Source of the DNA: Paragordius varius | Taxonomy: Eukaryota; Animalia; Nematomorpha | DNA: 64,000 bases | Reading direction: 5' to 3' | Assembly (NCBI GenBank): GCA_964247055.1 | Contig: OZ176060.1 | Location: forward strand, 62,001-126,000 | Part shown: in pieces, positions 43,724 to 63,584 of the stretch | Layout: every line of letters begins with the position of its first letter | Numbering within the stretch: position 1 is the stretch's first letter | Program-made: the position numbers and the translations under genes | Notes under the pieces: generated by a model | Seen by the model: the letters and a program-made list of their open reading frames with translations, nothing else | What the model was told of the DNA's origin: nothing | Databases searched by the model: none

Positions 43724-44405
43724 TTTTTTTTGAAAAACCACTTTTTTGTTTCAAAATATATTTTTAAATTGAACAAAATTATTGACTTTTAAATGTTTTT
43801 AATGAAAAATTTTACTTAATAACCTAGAGAATTTATATATTTATTCATTTCGGGTTAAAATCTTATAATTATCCAAAAAAAGATATACGGTTTCTCAAAG
43901 ATTTAAAGTTGATATCGATTTAAATTTTATGTATACTAAAGAGATTAAATAAGATTTAGATGATATTTTTAGGTTAATTTTTGGATTTTGAAATTTTGAC
44001 ATTTATTATTTTTTATTTTGATATTATTTTTAAAAATATTAAATTAAATTCCATCTATACTAATGTTTCATCTATAAATTCATTTTTTATCAAATTACCT
44101 CATGTAAAAATTCATGTACATTTTAATTAGATAAATGATTATTTAAATTGATTTAATAATAATAAATTCTAGTTTTTTTTATTTATAACATTTTTCTAAT
44201 CTTATTTTATCACGCTTTTCTTGAAAAAATATTATGTTTAGATTTTAAATTATATTAATTTATAATGTCCTTTAGTGTTTTACAATTACCAATGATCCAA
44301 CTTTATAAGCGACTTTATACAACCTTAGATGATTATAGGATATTTTACATATTTTTTTTCTTAAGTCTAATTAAAGTTTATCTTTGCAAAGTTACTCAAA
44401 TATTA

Positions 44406-44655
44406 CAGTAAAAATTAAAATTATACGGAGAAAACGTAAATATATAAAGACAAATTTGGCAATTCTTAACCGTGATATTTAAGTAAACAAGCAACATTAA
44501 AAAAGTATGCGGTAACACAATCTATTATATATTTTAGAACGTAAGTAAATAATTTTTTTGGAAAAATATTAATGTTTTAAAAATATGGTAATGTTTTAAT
44601 AAAAAAATTTGTCTTTTTATTTCTTAAGTTTTCGCCTGTATTTATTTAGTAATAT
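44406..44655. mobile_element. Degenerate MITE, TA|CAGT-ended family (Tc1/mariner/pogo-like termini)
   Basis: Left end TA-CAGTAAAAATTAAAATTATACGGAGAAAACGTAAATATATAAAGACAAA; degraded inverted partner TTTGTCTTTTTATTTCTTAAGTTTTCGCCTGTA at ~44608-44640. The right boundary is approximate. Confidence 0.45.
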
Positions 44656-44761
44656 TTAATTAATGTCATAAAATTGATATTAAACCGGTTTTTGGCGTAT
44701 GTATTTTTGTCTCGTCATTTACAAATCATTTTTTATAATTAACTTTCACAATTTTTTTTAG

Positions 44762-45570
44762 ATTTCGGCCACTCGACTTACAAACTTTGGTGTGATCTCG
44801 ATACCAAACTTTATAAAATAGAACTTAAAAATCAACAAGAAACGTATCTTGATGATCCATCTAAACCGACATCATTTTTTAATTTATTGGAAAATGAAGA
44901 TTTCACAAATGATGATTTACGGAGAATTCTGAGCGCTTCTTTCAATAACTTTTGTTATTTAAGGGAACATAAAAGCAAAAATACCTTACAAAATAATAAT
45001 TCTAATGATGAAAATACCAAAACCATCAAAGATACCCTAATTATTGATTTGGTAGGAGAACAGACAGAACCTTTAGATCTTTCGCTGAAAAAATCACCAA
45101 AAAGTATGAAAAAAATTACTCCGGTGTGCGACAGTATTGATTCCAATGATATAAGCATGAATGATATTAACAATCTATTTGATGATAGTAACAAAACAAA
45201 ACCTAATAAGTCTTTAAACTCTTCAAAAATGGTTAATAATTATCGATGTATTCAATGTGATAAAATTTATAAGGACAAACATGTTTTAGTCACACATATT
45301 CGTTCTGTTCATGAAAAAGTTAAATACTCGTGCAAAATTTGTTCGAAAATATTTTCTAGCAAAGGCAATCTTGATAGGCACATTAAGTCAATTCATAAGA
45401 AAATTAAACATAAATGTCCGATTTGTAAAACTAATTTTTCTCAAAAAGGCAATCTTGCAACACATATTTCAGCAGTTCATGAGAAAATTAAACATGAATG
45501 TCCGATTTGTAAAAAGGAATATACAAAAAAAAGCAGTCTTGCCATCCATATAAAAAATGTACATAAATGA
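44762..45570 (+). CDS. ZF1: main coding exon of a C2H2 zinc-finger protein (4 fingers, PLDLS motif); start exon not found
   Basis: A polypyrimidine-AG acceptor sits at 44760-44761. The frame is open from (G)AT TTC GGC (DFGHSTYKLWCDLDTKLYKIE...) to TGA at 45570. Four C-x2-C-x12-H-x4-H repeats occur at a 29-aa period. The ORF-track TTG start at 44887 is internal to the exon. Confidence 0.88.
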
Positions 45571-47146
45571 ACACTTAATTCAACATATATAATAGATTAA
45601 ATGCAGCATTAAATATGATTTAAATATCCATTTCGAAAATTACAGATATTGAGATACATATTATTTTATGAAGACGTTGTGCAAAAAGCATCATTAAAGA
45701 TATTGGAATGCTTTTTGACCGGTCTGTTCTGGAGTTTTTTGCAGATAAAAAATAAATTACAAATTCGAATATAAAAAAGTTTAAATTAATAATAGATCCT
45801 AATAGTTAATAACCATTTATATCACCACTTTTTGTAATTTCACCCCTTTACTTCTTTTATGCGACAACATTTTTTCGCGTACTGCCATTTTATATAAAAT
45901 TTATTTTTAGCTTTGCGAAAAAGATTATACTATTATTTATGGAAAAATAGTACTTAATTTATAGATTAAATTTTATTTGCCGATATTATATGATAACAAA
46001 ACACTGTTTTTTAACGTTTTAGCTCAATTATTTAATGAATATATTGCTTTTAACACAGCTTTTTTCAAAAGTATACATTATATATTTGTAAATAATATTA
46101 AATTTTTAACTTTTATACAAATAGAGATTGATAAACTTAAAATTATAAAAATATAATTTTGTGTAAAATAGATGGCGTGCATTTATCTTTTTTATTTTTC
46201 CTATTCTCTAAAACAAATATAGAGGGACCACACTAGACAACATTTGTTTCTTGAGTTTATTTATAAACTATATAATATATTTTTAAAAATTTTATTTTGA
46301 AACTTAATTAGTTGTAAATAACTAAGGTTTGGTGAAATCTTTCACCTTTCTAATAGAATCATACTTTAATTTTTATTTCAATAAACACATAAATTATCAT
46401 AAAAATGGAATTCCGTTTTCATTATATAAATAAAGGGCCCTCCTATTTAAAAAAGGTGAGAATAAAATTTATGTTATTATTGACTAATTATTTGAGGGAG
46501 TTTTGTAAAAGCGATATATCATTATCGGATTACTACACTATTTGTAAACGCATTCAATTTTTTTTAAAAAAGTAAAATTTTAAAGACACATTGATATTAA
46601 ATTTTCCTCACCATGTTTTTCTTTATGATCAAAATCAACAATTTCGTTCTCTATTAATGAATTAGTAAACTGGTCTCCTATAAAAAATTTAGCCATCAAT
46701 TTAAAATATAGGCATTAATTACATAATAAAATGTTTAATGTACTACAATAGGTAAATAACCTAAATTTTAAATTTTAATGTATATTGGTGAAATAATAAC
46801 TATATATTTAATATTTGTAATTGAATAACATATCTTTTGCCTTTATATTGCGTTTTTTTACTTACATTTGGTGTATTAAAAAAAGGAAACTTAAATGTTA
46901 ACTATTTTCTGATTTTATTAAGACAAAATTTTAACCTTCCTTTCGTAAAAAATATGTTTTGATTGAATAAACGATAAGATATAATTTGGTATCAATTTTT
47001 TATAAATTTCTAATCATTTAACTCCTCATAGTACCAAATAAAAAATATAGATATAAAATTTTGATTTTTGTAACATATATGGAAATCAAACAATCTAACA
47101 TTTATACGAAAAAATGATATTCGATATCATTTAAATAGTTTTAATA

Positions 47147-47683
47147 AAGTAAAAATTGAAAATATACGGACAAAACATAAAATATAAAACCAACCTTATT
47201 TTTTCTAAAAGACAACCATATTCTTTATAACATTAATTTTTCCCAAAACTGTATAGTTATAATTTATAATATAATTGGGTTTAATGATTTACAATTTCCC
47301 TATTTTTTAACCAAAAACGATGATTATTCGAAAAAATTATATTTAAAAAAGTATGTTTTTAGAAAAATATATTTGTCTTTATATGTTTACGATTTCTCTT
47401 AATAATTAGTACAGTACAAAATAAGGACATTTTTTTTTCAAAAGACAACCATACATATTTAAGCTTCATTTTTCTATTTGTAAATATAATTCATCGTTTT
47501 TAATTGCATATAATCGAATTGATATCTGTATTGTGACACAATTAATTATATATTTTTTAATTGTATTTATATTTTTTATATATGAAAAACATTAAGGTTA
47601 AAAAATGTAAGGTAGTCTTTTAGAAAATGATTTTTGTCTTTAATATTATAACGTTTGTCTGTATAATTTCGGTTTTTACTGTA
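47147..47683. mobile_element. MITE, TA|CAGT-ended family, ~75-bp TIRs
   Basis: Left AGTAAAAATTGAAAATATACGGACAAAACATAAAATATAAAACC...TTTTCTAAAAGACAACC matches the reverse complement of right GGTAGTCTTTTAGAAAA...GTCTTTAATATTATAACGTTTGTCTGTATAATTTCGGTTTTTACTG-TA. Confidence 0.65.
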
Positions 47684-47789
47684 TCCTTTTTATATATTAT
47701 TTTAGAGCAAAAAGAGAGAATAAGTTTTTATTGAGTTCACATAACTTACGAAGGGGCACATAGCCCGCTAATATCTTAGCTGGGTTGTG

Positions 47790-48120
47790 GGTTTTAATTA
47801 TAATTTTGATGATTTTAAACAAATATTTATTTATAGGCAAAAATTTATCTAGGTGACTTTAATACTATCATAGGAGAGGGTGTTATTTTATATAAATGAT
47901 AATTATAAATATATATTACCTTCATAAAAGTGAAAAAATGCCTTTTAACTTCTTTTAAAGAATAAATATTTATTTAATTATTAGTAGGTTAAGTGTATTC
48001 CAAGAGCCTTGAAGTAACATAAATGATACTATGAAAATATGCCATTTATTTAATGCAATAAATATACGGTACTGCTAATAATTAAAAAAATGCTAAATAG
48101 TTTATTAATTTGTTTCTTGC
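47790..48120 (+). repeat. Dispersed ~330-bp repeat, copy 1 (direct copy at 56230-56550)
   Basis: Shared blocks GGCAAAAATTTATCTAGGTGACTTTAA, GATAATTATAAATATATATTACCTTCA, AAAATATGCCAT and AAAAAAATGCTAAAT occur in the same order. Probably a TE fragment. Confidence 0.85.
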
Positions 48121-48850
48121 TTGATTAAAATTTGATCAAAAATAGATATTTTATCGTTTTTTAATTAATATTTTATTGAATTGATGATTTTATTTCTGAT
48201 GATTCATAACCTCTTAAGATAAATTCTCAACTGTATCTAATAGGCATAACAGCAAAGTCCAAGAATTTATAAAATCTAACGAAAACCTGTTGATGAATGA
48301 TTTTGTAGAACAGATGGTTCCATTATTAACTACGCAAATATCCATGTTCAATTTGTTAAAAACTTTCTCATAAAGTAAGTCAAAGAGCAGAAAGTTCATG
48401 AGGATTTAATATGATGTCAATTTAGTAAAATAAATTTAATAAATTTAATCATAAAAAAATCATCCACCTGTTTAAAAAAACTAAATCTATTGGATTTTAT
48501 AATGTTAAACATTTTATCAGCTTAGAAATTTTATTTCAACGTATTCATGTTATTTTAAGCGATTTACCCGATTTTTAGAGAGCAAATGTGACTTTCGAGG
48601 CCTGCATCCAAAAATTAAAATGTTTTAAATGCTTTTTATAAGTATTTTATGATTTAATATACTGATATATTTAAAAATAAACCGTTTAGCCTTATCAACA
48701 AAATTATCAACTTAATGGGGTATATTTTGCAAAACACTGATAATACTGGACAACAAATTTTTCTGCCACTCGAGTTTTTTGAATTTTCTGATATGTATCA
48801 TTTTAACAGTAAATCTGAAATAAAAATTATAACTCGTTGGAAGAATTTTG

Positions 48851-50135
48851 TATACCATTTCCCAGTCTAAATAAACGTTTTCCCAGTCAATCGAAACATT
48901 TTCCCAGTCAATCGAAACGTTTTTCCAATCAATCGAAACGGTTTCCCAGTCAATCGAAACATTTTCCCAGTCAATAAAAACATTTTCCCAATCAATAAAA
49001 ACTTTTTCCCAGTCAATAAAAACGGTTTTATTTTTGATGATAAATATCAAAACAAGACATAAAATTAACTTTTAACCATTATCAGCGTAATATTAGGCTA
49101 TTATTTTTCATGAAAAAACAATTATTGAATGACAATTTACCAGGTATATTCCAATGGACAATCATTAATGACTTATTCTTTAAAAGTTATATTTTTTGTA
49201 ATTTGAGATGTTTATAAGATAATATTTTTTATTTTATTGATGGTTCGCATTAATATTTGCCGAACGCTTCAATTAAAAAAGTCAGGTTTTTCCATAAAAA
49301 TACTGTCGGAAATAATCTCTAATTTTAAAAATAATTGATAATATATCTGACTACTAGAGGGGTGTCCTACCAAAAGACTTCGCGGGCCGCATTACTCAAA
49401 AAGCACGGTGTTCCGCATTTGATATATTTCATAAATAATTTTTCGATTAGACATAAGACTGTAAAATACAATAATATAACAATTTTTTTAAATTTGTTAC
49501 CAATTTAATGAACTCATTCAGAGTAATTGCGTAAGAAATATGTATATTACTAAGATTTTGTGGGCATATTTTTGCATATGGATCTCTAAATTTTTAGTGG
49601 GCAGCACATAGATCCTCGGCACTCCGCGTTGGACACCCGGTGAACCAATGATAAATATAATAAAATTAGCGTAAAATTTATGTTTAAGATCCAATATAAA
49701 GTGTTAAATGACCTTTTAGATAAAAATGGTATATTATTTTTATTTTTAATATTTCATCTAAAACTATAGATTTTTTAAGTTAGCCGCAAATAATGCGAAC
49801 CTTCAATAAAATAAATAATATTAAAAATATCTCAAATTCCAAAAATATAATTTTTAATTAATAAGTCATTAATGATTGTGCAGTGGAATATATTTGGAAA
49901 ATTGTCATTCAATAATTGTGTTTTTATAAAAAAATAATATCCTAATATTACGCTGATAATGGTTAAAAGTAAATTTATAATAAAAAATTAAACCGTTTTT
50001 ATTGACTGGGAAAATGTTTCGATTGACTGGGAAAACGTTTCGATTGACTGGGAAAACGTTTCGATTGACTGGGAAAACGTTTAATTGACTGAAAAAATGT
50101 TTCGATTGACTGGGAAAACGTTTATTTATGGTATA
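48851..50135. mobile_element. Foldback-type non-autonomous DNA transposon (~1.29 kb) with ~400-bp TIRs containing 21-bp tandem subrepeats
   Basis: Ends are TATACCAT...ATGGTATA. About 8 copies of TTCCCAGTCAATCGAAACGTT lie on the left and about 6 inverted copies on the right. The arms keep matching (e.g. TTTTAACCATTATCAGCGTAATATTAGG / CCTAATATTACGCTGATAATGGTTAAAA) to ~49265 and ~49780. Confidence 0.85.
49357..49642. mobile_element. Possible nested hAT-like (Charlie/Buster-type) MITE remnant
   Basis: Ends GAGGGGTGTCC... and ...TTGGACACCCGG resemble CAGGGGTGTCCAA-type hAT termini, and the subterminal GCGGGCCGCAT fits that. No 8-bp TSD is visible. Confidence 0.3.
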
Positions 50136-50151
50136 TATATATATATATATA
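50132..50151. repeat. (TA)n microsatellite between two foldback elements
   Basis: TATATATATATATATATATA runs directly on from the ATGGTATA end of the preceding element. Confidence 0.9.
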
Positions 50152-51365
50152 GACTGTGTGCAAAAAAATTTTTAACAAAAAAATTTTTTTTCATGAGGCT
50201 TATGACCAGCATACTCATTTGCCGCTAAAAATTATTGACAACCTAATTTTCGAAATATTGAGAGAAAATCGAAATTGGGCAAAAAATGAAAATTAAGGAT
50301 AAATCAACAAATAATGATATAAAATTTGAGATATTATGGTTTATTATCATTTTAAGAGATATTTTTAATATATAAATAGCCTAAAATCATATAGTTTTGA
50401 TTTCTATAAAATTTCAGGTCAAAAGATGGCGTTTTTCTTTTATCACACTTAAAAAACAGAATAAATTTAATGAATTATTAAAATAATTTATTTTAATTAT
50501 TTACTACCTTTACTCACTATTAAAATCTTAACATTTATATTTAATTCAGTAAAATAAACTTCTATAAAATAAAACCAAAAATATTGTTTTTTATTTTTGC
50601 ATTTGTCATCTGGTTTATGAGTGCAAAAAAATGTATACTGTTTTATTTTGGATTCTCACATGATTAAGAATTATTAAGCATATAATTTATGCAAAATAGG
50701 TTTTAAAAGTAGTATAATATCTACCAAAAAATCCTTACAATTTCCTCTAAAGTCTGTTTTATGACAAATTTATATTTGTATTTGGATTTGTAAATATTGT
50801 TGGTTGATATTCCATTACTTTTAAATCCTATTTTGCATAAATTTTATACTTTATTATTCCCACTCAGGTAAGATTCCAAAACAAAACAGTATAAATTTTT
50901 TATACCCAAAAAAATGCAAAAAAAACAATATTTTTGGTTTTATTTTGATATATAAGTTCTTTTTACTGAATAAAATATGAATAAATTTTAATAGTGAGTT
51001 TTAGGTAATAAATAATTAGAAAAAAATTATTTTAATATAGTTTCATTTTTGTGTTAAGAGTGTGTTAGAAAAACGCCATCTTTTGATCTGAAATTTTATA
51101 GAAACCCTAACTATATGATTTTAGGCTATTTATATATTGAGAATATCTCCTAAATGATAATAAACCATAAATTTTATCATTATTTAAATTATACTTAATT
51201 ATACTTAATTTTCACTTTTTGCCCGATTTCGAATTTCTCTCAATATTCCAAAAACTAGGTTGTCAACAAATAAAAATTTTGCGGCAAATGAATACGCTGG
51301 TCATAAGTTCTCATGAAAAAAAATTTTTTTGATTTTTTTCGTTAAAATTATTTTTGCACACAGTG
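50152..51365. mobile_element. ~1.2-kb palindromic foldback element with CACTGTG/CACAGTG termini (Transib/Chapaev-like ends)
   Basis: Left (G/C)ACTGTGTGCAAAAA pairs with right TTTTTGCACACAGTG. The arms align in inverted orientation for ~590 bp (e.g. TCAAAAGATGGCGTTTTTC / GAAAAACGCCATCTTTTGA; TTTATGCAAAATAGG / CCTATTTTGCATAAA), leaving a ~45-bp loop near 50742-50787. No coding capacity and no matching TSD. Confidence 0.85.
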
Positions 51366-51575
51366 ACAATAATGCAAAAAATGTTTATAAAATGGATATC
51401 ATTTGAAAAAAATAATTCTGCTTTTTTAAAAAATTATTGTTTATGCGAAAATGATTAAATTGCGGATTATATACAATGTATTTAAAAAAAAGCTCTTGAA
51501 ATTAAATTTTCGAATTTTATTTTAAGCGAATCCAGCTCAATTGAATTACATGGTGAATTATTTTAAATTTTTTCA

Positions 51576-52163
51576 TATACCATTTGCTCTTTAAGAGTGT
51601 GCTTGAACACTTCAAGTTGACCCACATTTCAAGTTGGTCCTTGAACATTTCAAGTTGGTCTTTAAACACTTCAAGTTGGTCGTTGAACACTTCTCTTAAA
51701 TTTTTTTAAATTTCGTTCATGATTTTTTGTATTTTTTATCATATTTTTAACCTAATTTTCTTTATTTATATTTATCATTAAAAAATAAAATATTCTATTC
51801 AATAACTACTTTTTTGTTTCATACTAATTTTTTTCAATGTAATAAAATTATTGACCAATTGTCTTCGAACTTGAAAATAATAACCCAAAAAAATTATATA
51901 TTTTTAATAACGTGTTAAGATCTTATATATATCCAAAATAATTAAAAAAAATTAATAAACATATACGGTTTTTTAATGATTAGAAGTTGATATTAAAATT
52001 TATGTTGGTAAAAGAAAATAAGTTAAAAACGATAAAATAGATGAATGATTAACGATTTGATTGATAAAAGGTATAAACAAACAAAAATGTTAAATGACTA
52101 ATTTGAAGTATTTAAGGACCAACTTGAAGTGTTCAAGGACACTCTTGAAGTGCCAATGGTATA
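51576..52163. mobile_element. MITE with TATACCAT...ATGGTATA ends and 21-bp subterminal repeats (copy 1, downstream of ZF2)
   Basis: About 4-5 copies of TTGAACACTTCAAGTTGGTCC at the left end and inverted GGACCAACTTGAAGTGTTCAAGGACACTCTTGAAGTGCCAATGGTATA at the right. The interior is homologous, inverted, to 61220-61750. Confidence 0.85.
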
Positions 52164-52518
52164 AGTAAAAAAGGTAAATATTTATAAAATTTGTTTAAAA
52201 AATGATTTGTTACGAAAACTCTATTTTACAGCAGTATAGGCCAATCAGTTATAATTAAGAATGAAATCTAGATAAAATTATGTTGTCTTAAAGAAATTTG
52301 TGTTTATATTTTTAGGTTTTGGCGGCATAATTTTGATTTTACTGTAATTTTTATGTACATAGGATACTCCAGAACAGATCGGTCAATAGCATGTAAAATA
52401 TTTTTTAAAATTTTTTTACAAAACATGTCCATAAAATGAATTAAATCCCAATATTTATTTGCAAAAATGATAAATTTTAAACATTTTATATTTATGTGAA
52501 CAGATGCTACATGTATAT

Positions 52519-53405
52519 TCAATTATGTAAATTTTTAATATGCTTAGCATGACTGCTTTTATGGGTATATTCCTTTTTACAAATCTTACAATTATATGTA
52601 ATTTTTTCGTGAACAGAATGAATATGTGTTGCAAGATTGCTTTTGTAAGAAAAATTAGTTTTACAAATCGGACATTCGTGTTTAATTTTTTCATGAATTG
52701 AATGAATGTGCTGAGTAAGAGAGCTTTTGTCAGAAAACAACTTTGAACAAACTTTGCACGGATATTTCACTTGTTCATGAACAGATTTAACATGTGTGGC
52801 AAGATGGTTTTTGTTAGAAAACATCTTACAACAAATTTTGCACGGATATTTTACTTGTTCATGGACAGAACGAATATGTTGGGCCAAGCCTTTTTTATAC
52901 ATATATATCTTATCACATTGATTACATCTATAATTATTAGCCAATTTTAAAGATTTAATAGGCTTTGTTTTGTTACTATCATCAAATAGCTTGTTAATAT
53001 CATTCAAGCTTATGTTGGAATCAATGTTTGAAGATACCAAGCTTATATCTTTTACAATTTTTGGTGATTTTTTCAGCGAAAGATCTAAAGGTTCCGTCTG
53101 TTCTCTTACCAAATCAATAATTAGGGTATCTTTGTTGGTTTTAATATCATTTTTATTTTCATAGTCTAAATTATTATTTTGTTGAGTATTTTCGCTTTTA
53201 TGTTCCCTTAAATAACAAAGGTTATGGAAGGAAGCGTTCAGAATTCTCCGTAAATCATCGTTTGTAAATTCGTCATTTTCCAATAAATCAATAAAAGATG
53301 CCGGTTTACATGGATCAATATACTCTTCTTGTTGATTTTTGAGTTCTACTTTATAAAGTTTGGTATCGAGATCACACCAAAGTTTGTAAGTCGAGTCGCC
53401 GAAAT
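52519..53405 (-). CDS. ZF2: main coding exon of a C2H2 zinc-finger protein (5 fingers, PLDLS motif)
   Basis: Minus-strand TTTTTTAG acceptor at 53407-53406. The frame is open from (G)AT TTC GGC GAC (DFGDSTYKLWCDLDTKLYKVE...) to TGA at 52519, with five C2H2 (H-x4-H) repeats. Clear paralog of ZF1. Confidence 0.9.
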
Positions 53406-55407
53406 CTAAAAAAATTTTCAGAAATGTAATATAAAACTCAAGTTATCAATGAAGAAACAAAAATCCTGACAACACAGGAAAGGAATCTGCAATCAAATTA
53501 TAACAAGTCACTATAAATTGATGATGCATACATATATCATTGAGTAATGGATGAAAAAATATAGACAAAATAAAAACATAAAGGAATCAAAGTTTATAAA
53601 AATACTTTTCAACATAAACTATAATATTATGTGTGATATATTAAATTCCTTATATTATCAATTACATCTCTAACCCCATTTTGTATATCATGAGTCCTAT
53701 AATATAAAGTATGGCTGTCAAAAATATATTTAGTTTTTTCCCTTATATCTGTACGTTTTTGGATTTTACCGGTATTAGATTTAGTTCTAAATTTTGACTA
53801 TTTAAAATAAAAATTATCTAAAATTAATAAAAGGTTGCAGAAAGTCGCGGATTGGTAATAAATTAATTTTTATCAAGACAACTAACCCCACAAATGACAC
53901 AACTTAAATTGATTAAAAGTTTAAAAATCAAACAATTTAATATTTTTCTCAAAAAAAGCGGTCTTGTTTTAAATGAAAAGAATATAAAACTAGTTTATAA
54001 TTTTATTTTTACGTTTGACTAGTAATCGAAATATTATAATAAATTTATATAATTTTTGCCGAATTATTCCATATATAATAGTATATTTATTATATTTATT
54101 ATTATTATACCCAATTTAATATTTTTACCAATTATTTTAATAAAAACCTCTATTAATTTTAATATAAGGTAACTTGATGTTTTATGATGAGTTTTTGTTA
54201 AAACATTAAAGTAGATTAGGAATTTAATTTTCGCGATTTATACATATATTTTCTGAAACCAAAAATAATTATTGATAAATAGAATCATATCAAAATAAAA
54301 AAATTAATACAAAATATCCAAATCTAAATAATATTTTAATAATATTATCTATCAACTATAAATGATATAATAGGTTCTATTATAATATTTTAAAATTAAT
54401 ATTAAATTAATTCATAAACAAATATTAAATTTTTTTAAAACAAATTATTTTGACATTTTATTACAAAAAATATATATTTAAATAAATGATACAATAAATA
54501 AATTTTTATTAAAGTATTTAAAAATGAATACCCATTTTCCAAATGAATTTGAATATTTTTTCGAAGAAACAAAAAGCAGACAATTTAAAAAACTGTTGGT
54601 AATGTAATCGTCTGTTGTTTCATTTCATAAAATTTAAATTATTTTCAATTATTTTTGGGTTTAAAACATTTTAAAATAAAATAATTTTTTAATATTTTTA
54701 AATTATATATATATAATCTTAATTTCCCTTAGAAGGTTATGCTAAATATTTTTAAATAATTACGATTTTATTTATTAATAATTTAAATAATTTATTTAAC
54801 TAAAATATATCTTATTTTAATTTTGATTTACTTTCCTGCACTTACTAAATCATAATACTTTTTACAATTACCAAACTTTATTTATTAATAAAAATGACGG
54901 ATTATCTTTTGTGATTTAGATTATTTTTTATAATTATCATAAAAAATATAAAATATATATTTTTGATAAAATTTAATGCATATATTTCTAATGATTTTTT
55001 TCATTTATCAAAGAAAACAATCTGTCAATTCTTTTTTATGAATATTTTAAAAATATATTTAGAGATAGTAAAAATATCTTAATCGGGATATCTTTATTTT
55101 GCGATTTTCCACTAAGTAAAAGTTTGGCATGTAAATGAATTTATATTTTATAAAAGACAGCGCCATTTTTAATATTAAATGCCCATTTAAATAAATTTCT
55201 TTCTTCTAAAGAATAAACTGTACTTTTATTGCTATAATTAAATATAAAATTATTAAGTGGTTGACAAATATGATTATAATTCTATCATTAAATAATAAAT
55301 AGTTTTGTTTAATTTACATTCAAAGATAGATAAGATAGGTCACATTTATTTTCCATATCTTTTTCTTTTTGAATACAATTATACTACATTGTAGAAAAAT
55401 ATTTTTA

Positions 55408-55440
55408 ACTAGCTGGCCCTGTCACGCTTCGCGTGGCATA
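55408..55440 (+). mobile_element. Possible 5' terminus of an insect-type Helitron-like repeat
   Basis: ACTAGCTGGCCCTGTCACGCTTCGCGTGGC resembles ACTAGCTG.CCCG....CTTCG starts of non-autonomous insect Helitrons as I recall them. No 3' end was identified. Confidence 0.3.
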
Positions 55441-56229
55441 GTCTCTTCAATAATTATCTTAATAATTTGCAATAAATAGTAAGGGAGATAAAAAAATAAT
55501 AAAAACATATTTAATAAGAATGTCTTAAATTATTATTCTTTTAAGGGTTTTTGCATGGGCTCAAATATTGATTCTAAAATGACCATATTAAAACTGTCCC
55601 TTATTAAAGTTAGTATTCAATAATTATTGAAATTATTTTAAGATTTTCGTTGTTCACACAGTTGGGATTAAGGGATATAAAAAGTAAATCATTTGTGGTC
55701 CCTTTTTAAAGGAAAGAATGATATTATACGAATTCTTCCGAAATGTATAAATTAAACTCGTATGGCCTCTCAAGTTTTTTAAAAGCGATGAATTAAATTC
55801 TTTGCTTCATAGGGCAAATATTTGGTTTTTAATACCATCATCTCAAGGATTATTTAAAAATACCTCAACATTAAATAATCGTTTTATGATGGCCTATTTT
55901 TAGGGCATAAAGGCCTCAACGGCTAATAAATAACGCCTGACCTTATTTAGTTACGGATAATATTTTAAGCTTTTATGAGCTGGCTTCATAAAATTTCTGT
56001 TAATTAGCTCCGAAACAACGCATTATCTATATAGTGGCGCAGTTTTTGGCGGACAGCTCCTACAGGGCAATAAAAGGGCGTTGGGGAAAATTTTTACGGA
56101 ATATCTTGATTTATAGGTTTTTTGAAAATTGGCTCCAAAGGCATGCTGTACCGATATGGTGACCGACGCGAGTAGCCACAAATCAGGGGTGAAACAAATA
56201 GCGCTAAAGTCCTGGGTGGGTGGGTGGGG

Positions 56230-56550
56230 GGTTTTTAATTAAAATTTTGGTGATTTTAAAGATATATTTATTTAAGGCAAAAATTTATCTAGGTGACTTT
56301 AAGAGCATTGTAGGAGACGGTGTTAATTTATAATTGATAATTATAAATATATATTACCTTCACAAAAGTTGGAAAAATGCCTATTAAATCCTTATAAAGA
56401 AAAAATATTAAATCAATTATTAGTAAGTGAAGTTTATGCCAAGGGCTTGCATAATGAATGTAACAAATATTAAAATATGCCATCTTAATGTAGTAATTAT
56501 ATTTTTTAAAAAAATGCTAAATGGTTTTCTGTTAATTTGTTTGTTACTTA
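56230..56550 (+). repeat. Dispersed ~330-bp repeat, copy 2 (direct copy of 47790-48120)
   Basis: Collinear similarity to copy 1; both copies are preceded by a GGGT-rich tract. Confidence 0.85.
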
Positions 56551-58013
56551 ACAATCAAATATTCAAATATGTATCAATTGACAATTGTGATATGCTTATT
56601 AAAATGACCTAAGAATACATTATTGGCTGTATATAAATATGTTTAAATAATTACAAATTTATATTTAAGTATTTACAGCAAGATTGGGCAGTACTGTTAA
56701 TTCTCAAATTGACTTTGACTAAATTACCTTCTTATTAAATTAAAAACTTTTATATTTTCTATTTCAAATCTGGCTTTTTGTCTAAACATATTTTATAATA
56801 ATATTATTAGGGATATTTATTATACTCAAAAATAGTATAATATAAACTCTAAAATTATTAGAATTTGATTTTTAAAAAATGATAGAAATATATTATAAAA
56901 TTAAAATGTAAGCCATCCAAACATCATGCTACGATTCATTTTTACACATCTTGAAAATTAAATTTATATTAATAAAAACTAAGTTTATATTCGCGTATAA
57001 AAAGCATTCTAAAGTTCGCTTAGAAATAAATTAGTTTTAAAATTAGCTAATATCGTAAAATAAACATTTTATTATAAAAAAGGCTAATTTATTCTAATCA
57101 TATTCAAATATTGCACCAATCAACTTCATTTATTGAATTAATAGTTTAAAGAAGTGAATTCCAACACAAATCGCTTTGCGGGCCGCATTTTTAGCTTAAA
57201 AATAGGACGTTAGGAATATATATGCGAGCATTCATAATTAATTTATATGATTTTTGAACATAAGATCATAAAAAGAAATCGGAAGGCAACAATATATCTT
57301 GTTATTTAAAAAATATTTTTTAGGAATCATTAATTTTTAGATTTTATGAGAATGTTTTTGATGGAATCTTTTTAAAAAAACTAAAAAATTCATTTCAATA
57401 TAAGGAATGACAATTGTTGTCTCTCATAAATAAATTAACTAGAAATATTTTCATATTCACTACAATAAAAATATTATTTTTATCGATGAATTTTTTTATA
57501 TATTTTAAATTATTTACTTAAATTATTAAATTTTTTTAAATATAATTATAAATTGGCGATTTTAATTAATTATGTTAAGTATTAGTTAATAAAATTTTAT
57601 CAGAATCAATATATTTTAAGTAATATATTTATATATATAATTATTTGTAGAAATATTCGAAAGTAATTAATATTTGATGAATATAGCTAAATAGTTTTTC
57701 ATAAGGTGAATAGATTAATTGTTATTAATAGTAAATAATATTAAACTATTTCAAATCATATATTAATTGATAAACATTTCTTTATGAATATCTTAATAGA
57801 TTTTCAATAAGTAATTAGATTTATCAGTACTAAATTATAATAACTAATTTAGTTGTTAATTATTGTCAAATACATATCCAGCAAAGAGAATTATTATTGG
57901 CTAATAATTGAGAACAAAGTGAAAAAAATAACTATAAGCCAATAATACTGCCCTTTGTTGAATATGCCATTTATTTGTCAATAATTTATAACTTTCTAGC
58001 AATGCATACTTAC

Positions 58014-58017
58014 CCAT
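58014..58017 (-). CDS. Candidate coding part of the ZF2 first exon (ATG G | GTAAGT, phase 1)
   Basis: The minus strand reads ...ACAGT-ATG-G|GTAAGT. This phase-1 donor exactly fits the phase-1 acceptor at 53405, giving M-D-F-G-D-S-T-Y (296 aa) across a 4608-nt intron. No transcript evidence. Confidence 0.45.
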
Positions 58018-58525
58018 ACTGTAATTGAATATTTTTTTGTGATTTAATTTATTATTAATTATACTAATTTAAAATATTAGTGTTTAAAAGATATATAAAT
58101 AAATATTAAATTTTTAGTTAATATTATTAGATTATTTCTTAACTATGAAATAAATTATTTTTTATTTGAATTATTTAATCAATAATTAATTTAAAAATAA
58201 AATATTTCTTATATTAAAAATAATAAAACTTATAATCTAGTTTAATGTTTCAACAATAAATTTATATTATATAAGATCAAATTACCAATATTAATTCCTA
58301 GTCTTTATTGATATAATTATATAGACTCATAATATAATAATACTAGTTATATTTAATTAATTTTATAAAATAATTAATACCGCTTTTTGGAGAAAAACAT
58401 TAAATTGTTTAATATTTTAAAATTTTAATTTATCATATAATAGTTTTGTCATTTTTAGTGTACATGGTATTAATAAATATATTTTATCAATCCTGCTTTA
58501 TAAGCGACTTATATGTAATCTTATA

Positions 58526-59101
58526 TTAATAACACTGCTCAACAAGGTTTTGCACCACCCCATTATTTTTGCATTTTCTGATACCTAATGGCATGGAAAG
58601 GCCAAAACAAAAAAGAAAATTGAGGCCGTTAATAGGATTTTTCCGAAATTTAATTTTTAAATTTGTATTTAATTCAAAAATAACAATCATTCCTCGTGCA
58701 CATATGTTTAAATATTCAAACGAACAAGTTGATACAAGTAATATTCCATGCATGAATAACAAAATTCCAGGTATTAAATAAGATACTAAACAAGCTAAGA
58801 GCCAAAGTATTAAAAATCCAAAAAGGGCTTATGTATAGTGTGATAGATATGGGCGGCTGCACAAGCTCTGCATATCCCCCAAGCGATCCAATTATGCCAG
58901 ATATGGCAAAGATAACAATATGTAATCGTAAAGCCCGATAAGAGAGACTTGCAAGCAAAATCCAGGCAAATTGACATGACAAATTAACCAATTCACAGAA
59001 TAAAGTTAGATAAATTCTACAATTAAATTGAATAAAAAGATATACAAATGGTCCAATCCCATAATAGTAAATTCTACTAAAAGTGGCTACACAACATCCA
59101 T
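58526..59101 (-). pseudogene. Hydrophobic (multi-pass membrane-like) exon or gene fragment with an apparent frameshift; unidentified
   Basis: A TTTCAG acceptor precedes ~128 stop-free codons (DGCCVATFSRIYYYGIGPFVYLFIQF...SGIIGSLGGYAELVQPPISITLYI...). An overlapping frame from ~58830 (ALFGFLILWLLACLVSYLIPGILLFMHGILLVSTC...FCFGLSMPLGIRKC...) runs to 58526. GC is higher than in the flanks. No family recognised. Confidence 0.4.
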
Positions 59102-59913
59102 CTGAAATTCAAAATACAAAACAACCAATAATTTAAAAAAAATAAGGTATATCCACTAGGTATAAATAAGGGATTTTTTATAAGAACCAACTCAAGAGAA
59201 ACAGTCTAATAAGTACTCGAAAGAACGAAAACTAACAAAAAAATATAACCTATCTGAAAGCCGAAGGTTTAAACCATAGAATGCCTTTTTTGTATTTTTG
59301 TAAAAAATTTTTATATGTGTGAAAAATTCACTTAAAAAAAAGACTAAATTTTGACGTTTAAGTCCGTCTATTTTTTTCTCTCTGATATATTTAAATGACA
59401 TATTTATATTCAAAAGATAGAGTTTAAAACGCTTTATTAAATGATATTAAGTTTATAATATAATAGCATTTTATTATAAAGTTATATTTATCTCGATTTT
59501 CACTTGTTTTTGAAAAATTGAAAAACCTATAAAATTTCAGAATTCTGATTGGCGGGATCAAAATTTTTTTGAATTTCGGTTTTAAAACACTGAAATTAGT
59601 CAAAATCTAAAAAGTTTGAGTGGTGGTGCTTAAAAATGTCCAAATTTGTCGACTAGTGTAGTTTATGTAGAAAAGTTTTCCTTTTAATAAGTATAGTTTT
59701 ATATCATAAAAAAATATTTTTCTTTATACTTTAACATTTTATCTATCAATTATAATCATTAGTGTAATGATTTAATGTTTGCAAAAGTTGTAATTTTTAT
59801 AGTTACAATAATAAACCTATACACAAAGTTTTATGTCATTACTTGGGCTTTTAAAACGAATTTTATCATTAATAATTTGACTTTTCAAATTACATTTATA
59901 CAAATTTGTTTAG

Positions 59914-60840
59914 ATTTCGGCGATTCGACCTACAAACTTTGGTGTGATCTCGATACTAAACTTTATAAAGTAGAACTCAAAAATCAACAAGAAGAATATA
60001 TTAATCCATGTAAACCGGCATCTTTTATTGATTTATTGGAAAACGAAGACTTTACAAACGATGATTTACGGATAATTTTGAACGCTTCTTTCCATAACCT
60101 TTGTCATTTAAGGGAACATAAAAACGAAAATGCTCTACAAAATAATAATTTAAATGATGAAAATAAAAATGATACCAAAACCAACAAAGATACCCTAGTG
60201 ATCTTTCTCTGAAAAAATCACCAAAAAATGTAAAAGATATAAGCTCGGTATCTTCAAACATTGATTCCGGTAACATAAGCTTGTATTTGATGATAGTAAC
60301 AAAAAACCTATTAAATCTTTAAACACTCAAAAATTGGACAATAATTATCGATGTATTCAATGTGATAAGATATATATGTATAAAAGCACCTTAACTAAAC
60401 ATATTCGTTCTGTTCATGAACAAGTGAAATATCCGTGCAGAATTTGTTCAAAGATGTTTTCTTGCAAAAGCTCTCTTATTCAGCACATTAAGTCAGTTCA
60501 TGAGAAAATTAAACATGAATGTCCGATTTGTAAAAGAGAATTTACTCAAAGAGGAGATGTTACATCACACATTCAATCTGTTCATGAACAAGTTAAATAT
60601 CCTTGTCCGATATGTAAAATAGATTATTCTAGAAAAAGATATCTCACCAAACACATTCTATCTGTTCATGAAAAAAAAACATGATTATCCCATTGGTAAA
60701 TCGGTATTTTCTAATAAACCAATCTTGCATCGCTCATTCAATCTGTTCATGAACAAATATAACATGAATGCCAGATTTGTAAAAAGGAATATACGGACAA
60801 ATACTATTTTAACAGGTACATCAAAAATGTACATAATTGA
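59914..60840 (+). pseudogene. ZF3: disabled paralog of ZF1/ZF2 (6 fingers, last two degenerate)
   Basis: Acceptor TTTGTTTAG at 59912-59913. Relative to ZF2 it has a net 34-nt deletion at ~60198, a 16-nt deletion at ~60283, 2-nt and 1-nt deletions near 60670 and 60718, an in-frame TAA before finger 6, and loss of zinc ligands (HDYPIG instead of HECPIC). Confidence 0.9.
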
Positions 60841-61219
60841 ACACTTTATAAATATATGTAGCATGTGTTCATAAATATAATTTGCTTAAAAATTATGATT
60901 TTCGCAAATGTTATATATTGAGATTAATGTTATTTTATGAAGTTTTGCAAAATGCATCATTAATAAAATATTTGAAATGCTATTTGACCGCTCTGTTCTG
61001 GACCTTTTTTTGTAGAAAAAAATTACAGTAAAAATCAAAATTATACCGTCAAAACCTAAAAATATAAACATAAATATTTTATTTTAGAACAACCATAATT
61101 TTATCTCCTTGATTTTCTTAATTATAACTGATTGGCCTACATTTTAGATTGTAAAATAGAGTTTAATTCGTAACAAATCTTTTTTCGACAAATAATCTAT
61201 ATAAATATTCACTTTTTTT

Positions 61220-61750
61220 TATACCATTCGCACTTCAAAAGTGTCCTTGAAAACTTCAAGTTGGTCCTTGAACGTTTCAGGTTGGTCTTTGAACATTTAA
61301 AGTTGATCCATAAATACTTAAAATTAGTCATTCATTTTTGTTTGTTTATACCTTTTATCAATCAAATCGTTAATCATTCATCTATTTATCGTTTTTAACT
61401 TATTTTCTATTACTAACATAAATTTTAAATCAATATCAACTTTTAATAATTGAAAAACCGTATAGCTTTATTATTTTCTCTAAATAATTTAGGATATTTA
61501 TAAGATGTTAACACTTAATTAAAAAATATATAATTTTGCTGGGTTAACATTTTTAATTTCGAAGACAATTAAAAGTCAATAATTTTGTTAAATGGAAAAA
61601 ATAGTTTGAGACAAAAAAGTGGTTTTAAATTAAAAAATTTTATATTAAATGAATAATATGAATAAAAAGGTAGGTTAAAAAATCAAATACATTCAAATAT
61701 TTTAAGGACCAACTTGAAGTGTTCGACAACACTCTTGAAGTGATGGTATA
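61220..61750. mobile_element. MITE with TATACCAT...ATGGTATA ends (copy 2, downstream of ZF3, inverted relative to copy 1)
   Basis: Left TATACCATTCGCACTTCAAAAGTGTCCTTGAAAACTTCAAGTTGGTCC; right GGACCAACTTGAAGTGTTCGACAACACTCTTGAAGTGATGGTATA. Interior 61320-61560 matches the reverse complement of ~51850-52105. Confidence 0.85.
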
Positions 61751-63584
61751 TGATAAGCATAACATATTCATATATACTACTAAACTATAGCCAGTGTGTT
61801 TAGATCACCTCATAATATATATTTTTGGTTAAATATATATATATTTTTAAATATTTAATTATCTAAACTAATTCAAATTTCTAAAAGGAACTAAGGAGAT
61901 TAAATGTTAAATTATGGCTATCAAAACTAGCTATTTTATCTAAAATAAACATAAACCCCAGACACATTGTTAAAACTTATTATAATCAAAATTTTATTAT
62001 AATGAAATTCTAAGGGTTAAACAGGCAAAAATTTTAGTTTTTAGGAAAACATCAAAAGTATAGACATAGGAGAGTTAAAAACCTAATCTTTCAAGTTTAG
62101 GTTACGCATAATTTGTATATATTTTGCCATTTAATTTCGTATGATTTTCAAATAATACACATAAAATTTTTAAATTAATCAACTGATCTAAATTCGTATA
62201 TTTATATCGTCAAATAATATTAAAAGGAGAGTAAATATTTCACATATACGGACAAAATGTAAAATATGAAGACAAATATAATTTTTCAAAAAATCATGCA
62301 TTCTAAATCTTAATAAATTTAAATTTAACTCACATTATGTATATCTTGATAATGTTAAACATTTACACCTCGAACATTTTCGAGTTTATTTTAAAATAAC
62401 TAGCCCATTTATGAAGAGCGATGAAATTTGGGATTCGGGGTCTATATCAAAAAATTAAAATATTTGAAATATCTGTTTGTCTATTTATAAGTAATTTATG
62501 ATAAAATTTACTGATATTTACAAATGAACCGTTAAACCTTTATCAAAAAAAATATATTTAACATGGCGCAAATTTTGCCATACTCTGTTATAAACCGTTG
62601 CAATTAAAGTGTAATTTGGTTAAATCAGTCGTGAGGATCAAAACCAAAAGCCCTATGATATTCCTAATACTTTTCCTATCGAATAATTTTTTTTATATAT
62701 TTCAATTTTATAATTTAAGAAAGAAGCCTTTAGAAAGAGGATATAAATTAATTGTATTATCACGAGCTGATGAAAAATATAACGCGGAGTTTTTTTTAAA
62801 GAAAATTTGACTTTATTTGGTCTTTCAAGTCGAATTCACGACAACAAGTAGCCTACGAGTAGTATTATATGTGTTATTAATTATCCAAATTTGTTAAAAT
62901 TTTTTATATTTATAATAATAAAAATTGTAGTATTTTATATTTTTGTACTATGCAAATATTATAACCATTGTTTACTCGTATAATTTTGTATGTATTATCG
63001 CTAATCATATTTATTTGGTAAATTACCATCACAGAAATTTCGTTTAAAACCTATATACTAAGTGAATGATCATTTTCACATATATTTTATTATAGCGGAT
63101 AAATGTAAAAATTAACTGTATAAGTTGAATTGTTAAGTACATGCCATCTTTTTAATGTTTATATTTAATATATATCGTAATTAGTTCAAAGATAGTTTAT
63201 TAGGAATGTATAAAAAGTTATGTTACAATGTTGACTCACCAATAATAAAGTACATGACTGAAAAAATTGTTTTGATTTTCTTCTAAATATTTTTATTAAT
63301 TTTCAATTATGATTATATCTTGTTTAATGTTAAATTTATAATATTTTATTGTGAAATTAAGCTAGAATTCGCATTAAATAAAAGTCGAAAATAATTTTAA
63401 TTTATATCCATTCGATTATTTTGATATAAATTACCTTTTATATTATGCGGAATTCTCTCAATTATTCTACATTCTACCATTTTTAAAAAATATAAACATT
63501 TTTAGGAGGCACGAATATATAGAGTGCTGTGTTTTGTCCATATTTGGGTATCAATAGCAACATAAAGGGAATTCTTCCATGATT

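Follow-up and report, generated by a model that had tools for sequence, protein, structure and literature searches.

The window analysed here, a 64-kb stretch of contig OZ176060.1 from Paragordius varius, opens with a long satellite array, and in the 20 kb of DNA past this array the only recognisable coding sequences are three blocks that specify tandem C2H2 zinc fingers, referred to below as ZF1, ZF2 and ZF3 (table 1). The window is very AT-rich, with a guanine plus cytosine (GC) content of 23-26%. An earlier note on this DNA had proposed that three paralogous C2H2 copies begin about 1 kb from the end of a satellite of more than 43 kb, and this is borne out: the array measures 43.7 kb and ends 1029 bp before ZF1. 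The bounds given for the system were likewise exact, 44762 being the start of the predicted ZF1 exon and 60840 the end of the ancestral stop codon of ZF3, and no further paralogs were found beyond the three when the 64-kb window was searched with tblastn. The zinc-finger family is genuine and previously undescribed, and its mode of evolution resembles that of the KRAB zinc-finger proteins; it is a system of a known kind, not a new kind.

The identity of the fingers is clear from several searches. Pfam recognises the zf-C2H2 family in the three copies with E-values of 1.6e-19, 8.4e-18 and 1.4e-19 (four matched stretches per copy), a search of PDB aligns the array to the DNA-bound fingers of ZNF568, PRDM9, ZBTB24 and CTCF, and AlphaFold predicts five beta-beta-alpha units. 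Each of the 13 intact fingers has the spacing C-x2-C-x12-H-x4-H of tandem C2H2 fingers (PF00096), and the fingers follow each other with a period of 84 nucleotides (nt). The finger unit is thus 28 amino acids long, the canonical C2H2 period, and not 29 as had been stated. The linkers are indeed atypical and differ from TGEKP, as the note had it: their consensus is (S/A)(V/I)HE(K/Q)(V/I)K(Y/H), with E-K/Q-V/I-K between the last histidine and the next aromatic residue. All thirteen four-residue helix signatures (positions -1, 2, 3 and 6) had also been read correctly, and of the proposed finger counts of four, five and six, those for ZF1 and ZF2 hold, but ZF3 possesses four intact fingers followed by two decayed relics. 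At helix position +1, lysine occupies 12 of the 13 fingers and arginine the remaining one.

It had further been claimed that no finger is shared between the paralogs, but positional homology among the fingers is obvious. The first fingers (F1) of the three copies are 78-86% identical at the nucleotide level, and comparable values are obtained for the group comprising F2 of ZF1, F3 of ZF2 and F2 of ZF3 (74-87%, with 87% for the latter two), for F3 of ZF1, F4 of ZF2 and F3 of ZF3 (76-85%, with 85% for the former two) and for F4 of ZF1 with F5 of ZF2 (80%); different fingers inside one protein show 45-74% DNA identity. The F2 group has an additional member in the second finger of ZF2, which arose by tandem duplication and shows up as 84 inserted nt when ZF2 is aligned with ZF1. 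Homologous fingers have between none and three of the four contact residues in common, the closest case being DSSQ versus CSSQ.

All three copies lack a start codon, and each opens right after a conserved phase-1 splice acceptor (TTTTTTTAG). The first in-frame ATG of ZF1 does not occur before codon ~118, and ZF2 is without any in-frame ATG ahead of its second finger. A T-rich tract with an AG precedes every copy (TTTTTTTTAG, TTTTTTTAG and TTTGTTTAG), and a step in the identity between paralogs coincides with it exactly in each of the three: the identity is 93-95% over the first 90 exon bases, 69-83% at positions -30 to -1, and about 50% beyond -60. In both ZF1 and ZF2, a stop codon is met 5-12 codons ahead of the conserved part. 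The absence of start codons, together with the identity step at the acceptor, therefore suggests that each copy is a 3'-terminal exon entered through its phase-1 acceptor, as opposed to a complete gene, and that it would be spliced to a 5' part located upstream.

The pattern of substitution was assessed using Nei-Gojobori counts, from which we derived the synonymous divergence (dS) and the ratio of non-synonymous to synonymous change (omega), comparing only fingers that are positional homologs. ZF1 and ZF2 differ by 120 substitutions over 794 aligned bases, and the indels separating them (3, 9, 3, 9 and 84 nt) are all in frame; when neutral evolution was simulated with 60 substitutions, the frame of ZF2 stayed open in less than 1% of runs. 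For the N-terminal region upstream of the fingers, omega is 0.40-0.42 between ZF1 and ZF2 (dS 0.26-0.28) and 0.25 between ZF2 and ZF3 (dS 0.18), the latter pair showing 12 synonymous differences over 76 sites and 14 non-synonymous ones over 332 sites. The finger scaffold gives an omega of 0.23-0.40 in all pairs. By these estimates (0.23-0.42 altogether), the N-terminal region and the finger scaffold are under purifying selection.

ZF2 and ZF3 constitute a local inverted duplicate pair, having ~800 nt of non-coding 3' flank in common (~75% identity), including a foldback element. Since the dS between the two copies is similar to the divergence of this flank (~25%), with non-synonymous change being four-fold lower, the constraint must post-date the local duplication, and ZF3 must have died only recently, after evolving under constraint for a large part of its existence. 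Judged by its lesions, ZF3 is a pseudogene: it has suffered two frameshifting deletions (the first of which removed part of a motif discussed below) and a premature stop, its fifth finger is a frameshifted relic, and a zinc-binding histidine of the relic sixth finger has changed to tyrosine. It might be argued that all three copies are dead, i.e. unexpressed partial duplicates stranded in satellite-flanking DNA, with the signature of constraint inherited from functional parents elsewhere. Such an interpretation would sit well with the failure to find a start codon or a 5' exon, with the visible decay of one copy out of three, and with the repeat-rich, gene-poor surroundings containing foldback elements and miniature inverted-repeat transposable elements (MITEs). 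We nevertheless regard it as distinctly unlikely: constraint acting after the local duplication, as the low omega of the ZF2-ZF3 pair attests, speaks against mere dead fragments, and frames of ~270 and ~296 codons have been kept in DNA of 23% GC with in-frame indels only.

The proposal that contact residues diversify on a conserved scaffold is supported. The comparison of helix with scaffold codons recommended in the earlier note was carried out on the paralogs of the window, the helix class being defined as positions -1, 1, 2, 3, 5 and 6 and the rest being counted as scaffold, and the helix proves to change faster. Amino-acid changes affect 14 of 24 helix positions versus 18 of 85 scaffold positions between ZF1 and ZF2 (Fisher test, p = 7.5e-4), 12 of 18 versus 14 of 66 between ZF2 and ZF3 (p = 4.7e-4), and 14 of 18 versus 16 of 66 between ZF1 and ZF3 (p = 5e-5). 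When only the four contact codons (-1, 2, 3 and 6) are considered, the proportion of non-synonymous change exceeds the gene-wide synonymous proportion, being 0.49 versus 0.28 for ZF1-ZF2 (p = 0.0085) and 0.42 versus 0.18 for ZF2-ZF3 (p = 0.0086). Across the 13 intact fingers, variability among the 28 positions is highest at -1 and +3, and +6 and +2 rank in the top seven.

The exon encodes, ahead of its 4-5 fingers of canonical length, a conserved segment of ~70 amino acids and a disordered stretch rich in N, D and K that contains the sequence PLDLSLKK. ZF1 and ZF2 have 78% identity in the N-terminal region, whose earlier description as nearly identical was an overstatement. An exhaustive HMMER search with the N-terminal 159 amino acids yielded no match among 1.84e9 representative proteins, comparison with Pfam at E-values up to 10 gave only noise, and scans of metagenome and viral contigs were without a match; a word-index protein search retrieved distant matches restricted to the fingers, with at most 44% identity. 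As far as sequence comparison can tell, the N-terminal region and the family are lineage-specific. AlphaFold models the region with low confidence, indicating a possible beta-hairpin at residues 6-24 and two short helices, followed by disorder.

PLDLSLKK is part of a block (EQTEPLDLSLKKSPK) that is invariant between the two intact copies, ZF1 and ZF2, and the PLDLS motif has been lost from ZF3. The surroundings of the motif have a low predicted local distance difference test (pLDDT) score and no predicted secondary structure, consistent with an accessible region. PLDLS-like motifs let DNA-binding repressors dock the corepressor CtBP (PMC2749851), which is a bilaterian corepressor (PMC9907507), and the proteins encoded by the family are probably sequence-specific repressors that recruit CtBP. 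If this holds, an animal would be the probable host; a gene for CtBP itself does not occur in the window.

We consider it rather probable that the blocks are paralogous copies of the last exon in a C2H2 gene family restricted to this lineage, that the family undergoes birth-and-death evolution in repeat-rich, satellite-flanking DNA, and that the encoded proteins are, as predicted, CtBP-recruiting repressors. Under this reading, each exon would be joined via its phase-1 acceptor to a 5' part, the finger array of the resulting protein would bind a DNA site of 12-15 bp, and the PLDLS motif would bring in the CtBP corepressor complex, silencing the bound site. The copies would have been made by local, partly inverted segmental duplication and the fingers gained through tandem duplication, while replacement of the base-contact residues under positive or diversifying selection would have endowed each paralog with a different specificity; the ZF3 copy would then have decayed recently. 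If the family is expressed, the strategy of the KRAB zinc-finger genes (gene duplication with scaffold and effector retained and the DNA-reading residues rewritten) would have been invented independently in a non-tetrapod, very AT-rich eukaryote, a case that would bear on the frequency with which such systems arise and on the corepressors they use. The effector appears to be unlike those of known families, consisting of an orphan N-terminal region with apparent recruitment of CtBP by a short linear motif.

Table 1. Features of the zinc-finger locus and its satellite context (positions in the window; contacts are helix residues -1, 2, 3 and 6).
Feature	Position	Strand	Remarks
Satellite array	1-43733	.	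Tandem Repeats Finder (TRF), anchor spacing; context only
ZF1 acceptor AG	44760-44761	+	Phase 1
ZF1, predicted 3'-terminal exon, intact	44762-45570	+	~270 codons + TGA stop; translation
ZF1 PLDLS motif	45070-45084	+	Amino acids 105-109, then LKK; candidate CtBP-docking site
ZF1 array, four fingers	45241-45567	+	Contacts DHVT / SGNR / QGNT / KSSI
ZF2 acceptor AG	53407-53406	-	Directly upstream of exon
ZF2, predicted 3'-terminal exon, intact	52519-53405	-	~296 codons + TGA stop
ZF2 PLDLS motif	53077-53091	-	Amino acids 107-111, then LKK
ZF2 array, five fingers	52522-52932	-	Contacts YKGQ / NNHT / DSSQ / YSNT / HSSK
ZF3, decayed copy (pseudo-exon)	59914-60840	+	Two frameshifting deletions, premature stop
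34-nt deletion in ZF3	60199/60200	+	Frameshift; takes out ...IIDLVREQTEPL and with it the first part of the PLDLS motif
16-nt deletion in ZF3	~60283/60284	+	Second frameshift
ZF3 intact fingers, four	60346-60681	+	Open frame, then premature TGA
ZF3 premature TGA	60682-60684	+	Ends the four-finger frame
ZF3 F5 relic	60685-~60759	+	Cysteines lost, frameshifted
ZF3 TAA	60760-60762	+	Precedes F6
ZF3 ancestral stop	60838-60840	+	End of pseudo-exon

Several points weigh against this reading. Not only do the copies lack a start codon, but no 5' exon was found within the window: 36 upstream open frames of at least 45 amino acids on the correct strand are devoid of any Pfam domain, a Pfam scan of these frames revealed no BTB, ZAD or KRAB exon near the copies, and no BTB domain occurs anywhere in the interval 43.7-64 kb. 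Clear homology between the paralogs reaches only ~60 nt beyond the acceptor on its upstream side, and the duplications may have left the 5' exon behind. An omega above 1 at the contact sites is drawn from 12-16 codons per comparison, by Nei-Gojobori counts in a genome with 23% GC, and the two contact-codon comparisons have the ZF2 branch in common. The linkers are not of the TGEKP type, and canonical DNA contacts are assumed by analogy; CtBP binding, in turn, is predicted from a motif of five residues.

The DNA upstream of ZF2 and ZF3 has a GC content of 12-15% and is of low complexity, matching itself in both orientations, and homology is untraceable there because of this composition; a blastn comparison of the three upstream regions produced low-complexity matches only, again in both orientations. 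Between ZF1 and the satellite there is a gap of only 1 kb. A candidate micro-exon is present upstream of ZF2, extending from an ATG at 53533 to 53512 on the minus strand (22 nt), followed by GT in the required phase and ending ~106 nt from the acceptor. A similar ATG..TGCA..TATAGT string is found upstream of ZF3 (59775-59806), and the corresponding place in ZF1 (44636-44654) has CTG at the ATG position; the occurrence of this micro-exon-like string may be a coincidence. The 5' part may be represented either by tiny private first exons or by a remote shared 5' part, with the blocks functioning as its alternative terminal exons.

The latter arrangement would parallel that of the insect genes lola, fruitless, broad and mod(mdg4). 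Alternative 3' exons are a feature of lola and mod(mdg4), and mod(mdg4) trans-splices exons lying on the opposite strand. This scenario would explain why all three copies follow the same phase-1 acceptor without a start codon, why clear homology sets in only shortly upstream of it, why the vicinity is devoid of a 5' exon with a known domain, how ZF1 can be so close to the satellite, and why both strands carry copies, the opposite-strand copy (ZF2 versus ZF1 and ZF3) then requiring either a separate promoter or, as happens for mod(mdg4), trans-splicing. However, a common 5' exon is not seen in the window, and each exon repeats an N-terminal region of 160 amino acids, whereas the isoform exons of lola and mod(mdg4) are short. 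The composition of the upstream DNA also makes homology there impossible to judge, and a tiny private first exon could do the same job (the ATG of the ZF2 candidate is, however, not conserved in ZF1). We thus view alternative terminal exons as unlikely. The comparison with these genes extends to the different finger sets borne by start-codon-less terminal exons at acceptors, but the exons described here are recent mutual duplicates containing 4-5 tandem C2H2 units, in contrast to the single pair or the FLYWCH domain of lola and mod(mdg4), and the regions specified above yielded neither BTB nor a shared 5' exon.

Two other candidate explanations were rejected. All three copies end with TGA, though TAA would be expected in this genome, and this prompted us to consider a ciliate genetic code; it was dismissed because reading the upstream TAA and TAG codons as glutamine would yield no conserved coding sequence, the similarity at the DNA level itself extending no further than ~60 nt ahead of the acceptor. 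Transport of the exons by a transposon was dismissed as well, as no terminal repeats consistently bracket the copies and the MITE termini nearby belong to separate insertions.

Returning to the reading of the copies as paralogous last exons, the earlier note had likened the family to both KRAB zinc-finger proteins and ZAD-ZNFs, and the first of these comparisons fits. Like the KRAB proteins, the family comprises clustered young paralogs created by segmental duplication, with the whole array confined to a single terminal exon, a turnover of fingers by gain and loss, positive selection on the base-contact residues of the helix combined with a conserved scaffold, an N-terminal part that recruits a corepressor (here predicted), and a satellite-adjacent location. 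The differences concern the linkers and histidine spacing (EK(V/I)K(Y/H) and H-x4-H here, TGEKP and H-x3-H in KRAB proteins), the low number of fingers (only 4-5), the very AT-rich eukaryotic host, and the corepressor, which is KAP1/TRIM28 there and would be CtBP, contacted via a short linear motif, here. No KRAB domain was detected in the N-terminal regions of the exons (Pfam, E-values up to 10) or in the upstream frames of at least 45 amino acids. The insect ZAD-ZNFs (e.g. Nicknack, Oddjob and Kipferl), some of which act at heterochromatin, are similar in being a lineage-specific C2H2 family with a fast turnover and a disordered stretch that connects the N-terminal part to the fingers. Nevertheless, the ZAD domain (C4, PF07776) was not found in the exon or the upstream open frames of that size, and positive selection in Drosophila ZAD-ZNFs concerns mainly the linker, not the C2H2 domains, unlike in KRAB zinc-finger genes (PMC7655104). 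In the family reported here, purifying selection acts on the region ahead of the fingers, and it is the contact residues that evolve fast.

The combination of a C2H2 array with a PLDLS-type motif in a disordered segment is reminiscent of CtBP-dependent repressors such as ZEB1/2, ZNF217, ZNF366 and the Drosophila proteins Knirps, Kruppel and Snail. These are, however, ancient, conserved, single-copy developmental regulators, as opposed to an orphan family of local duplicates with diversifying residues and a fresh pseudogene. PRDM9 likewise has tandem fingers that lie in one exon and evolve rapidly at positions -1, 3 and 6, but a PR/SET domain is missing from the exon-encoded protein according to Pfam, the fingers do not form a minisatellite-like array (see the identities between different fingers of one protein above), and the variation is seen between paralogs.

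The proximity of the satellite deserves separate consideration. Its monomers measure 219-222 bp from 1 to ~13.1 kb, 242-244 bp at ~20-38 kb, and 235 bp at ~14.9-18.6 and 40.4-42.2 kb, so that the 235-bp type flanks the 242-bp block at either end; identity between the monomer types is 80-85%. A literature search turned up no paper giving the sequence of this satellite. The earlier note had envisaged the zinc-finger proteins as factors that recognise the satellite or local repeats and co-evolve with the monomer subfamilies of the adjacent array. What speaks for such a role is the distance of only 1 kb that separates the genes from a satellite comprising several types of monomer, the diversification of the contact residues, and the fact that some fast-evolving zinc-finger proteins, e.g. 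Nicknack and Oddjob, are found at heterochromatin (PMC7655104, PMC12947871); CtBP is moreover reported to contact the H3K9 methyltransferase G9a directly (PMC12809078). Adjacency at a single locus, on the other hand, does not indicate the target of a trans-acting protein. Approximate target sites for ZF1 and ZF2, derived with a textbook recognition code, have no match with at most one mismatch in the 43.7 kb of satellite and are rarer there than controls with permuted finger order, an exploratory and weak test given the crude motifs and the non-canonical linkers. Satellite fragments, furthermore, are absent from the gene region. The human zinc-finger cluster at 19p12 is reportedly interleaved with beta-satellite (Eichler et al. 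1998, cited in PMC8125562) and offers a precedent for the location; in our own reading, it suits the satellite as a setting for duplication and not as a target. Binding to the satellite or local repeats thus finds no support at this locus and strikes us as quite doubtful, the location beside the satellite being most likely a matter of where young duplicates arise and persist. Very unlikely, in our view, is a still more elaborate scheme with terminal exons from both strands of one locus trans-spliced to a remote common 5' part, by which a CtBP-recruiting module would be given several fast-replaced DNA specificities, possibly directed against neighbouring repeats. The locus alone adds nothing new on satellite biology.

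Various other repeats populate the neighbourhood of the copies. A dispersed repeat of ~240 bp (AAAACCACTTTTTTGTTTCAAA...TATACGGTTTTTCAAT...) is placed exactly at the satellite end (43732-43965) and has further copies downstream of ZF2 (51790-52034) and of ZF3 (61387-61639, reverse). Foldback-like elements, whose inverted arms are composed of 21-bp tandem subrepeats, occupy positions 48816-50193, 51556-52183 and 61193-61779; the subrepeat is TTTCCCAGTCAATCGAAACGT in the first element and TTCAAGTTGGTCCTTGAACA-like in the other two, which lie downstream of ZF2 and of ZF3, respectively, and are part of the duplicated segment. The interval 50153-51364 (1.2 kb) is 78% self-complementary from end to end and may be a long palindrome or a further foldback. 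A MITE family has the termini CAGTAAAAAT(T/C)AAAATTATACGGACAAAAC, usually preceded by TA, which suggests a Tc1/mariner-type origin as far as the termini are indicative; one complete element of ~540 bp with inverted ends is located at 47144-47684, and termini of the same kind occur at ~44413, ~61027, ~62230, ~63586 and 52250-52360 (reverse).

Two GC-rich islands, at 56000-56240 (42%) and 58800-59000 (40%), stand out from the background of 12-25%. The first ends in GGTGGGTGGGTGGGGGG, and the second falls within the only other sizeable open frame, 58719-59108 on the minus strand, encoding 130 amino acids of hydrophobic appearance. Neither the islands nor this frame have a match in Rfam, Pfam, PDB or the protein collection, and no tRNA or Rfam family was detected in the searched parts of the window. 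Finally, a direct repeat of ~430 bp, unrelated to the zinc-finger exons, links positions 47757-48184 and 56195-56607 with 75% identity.

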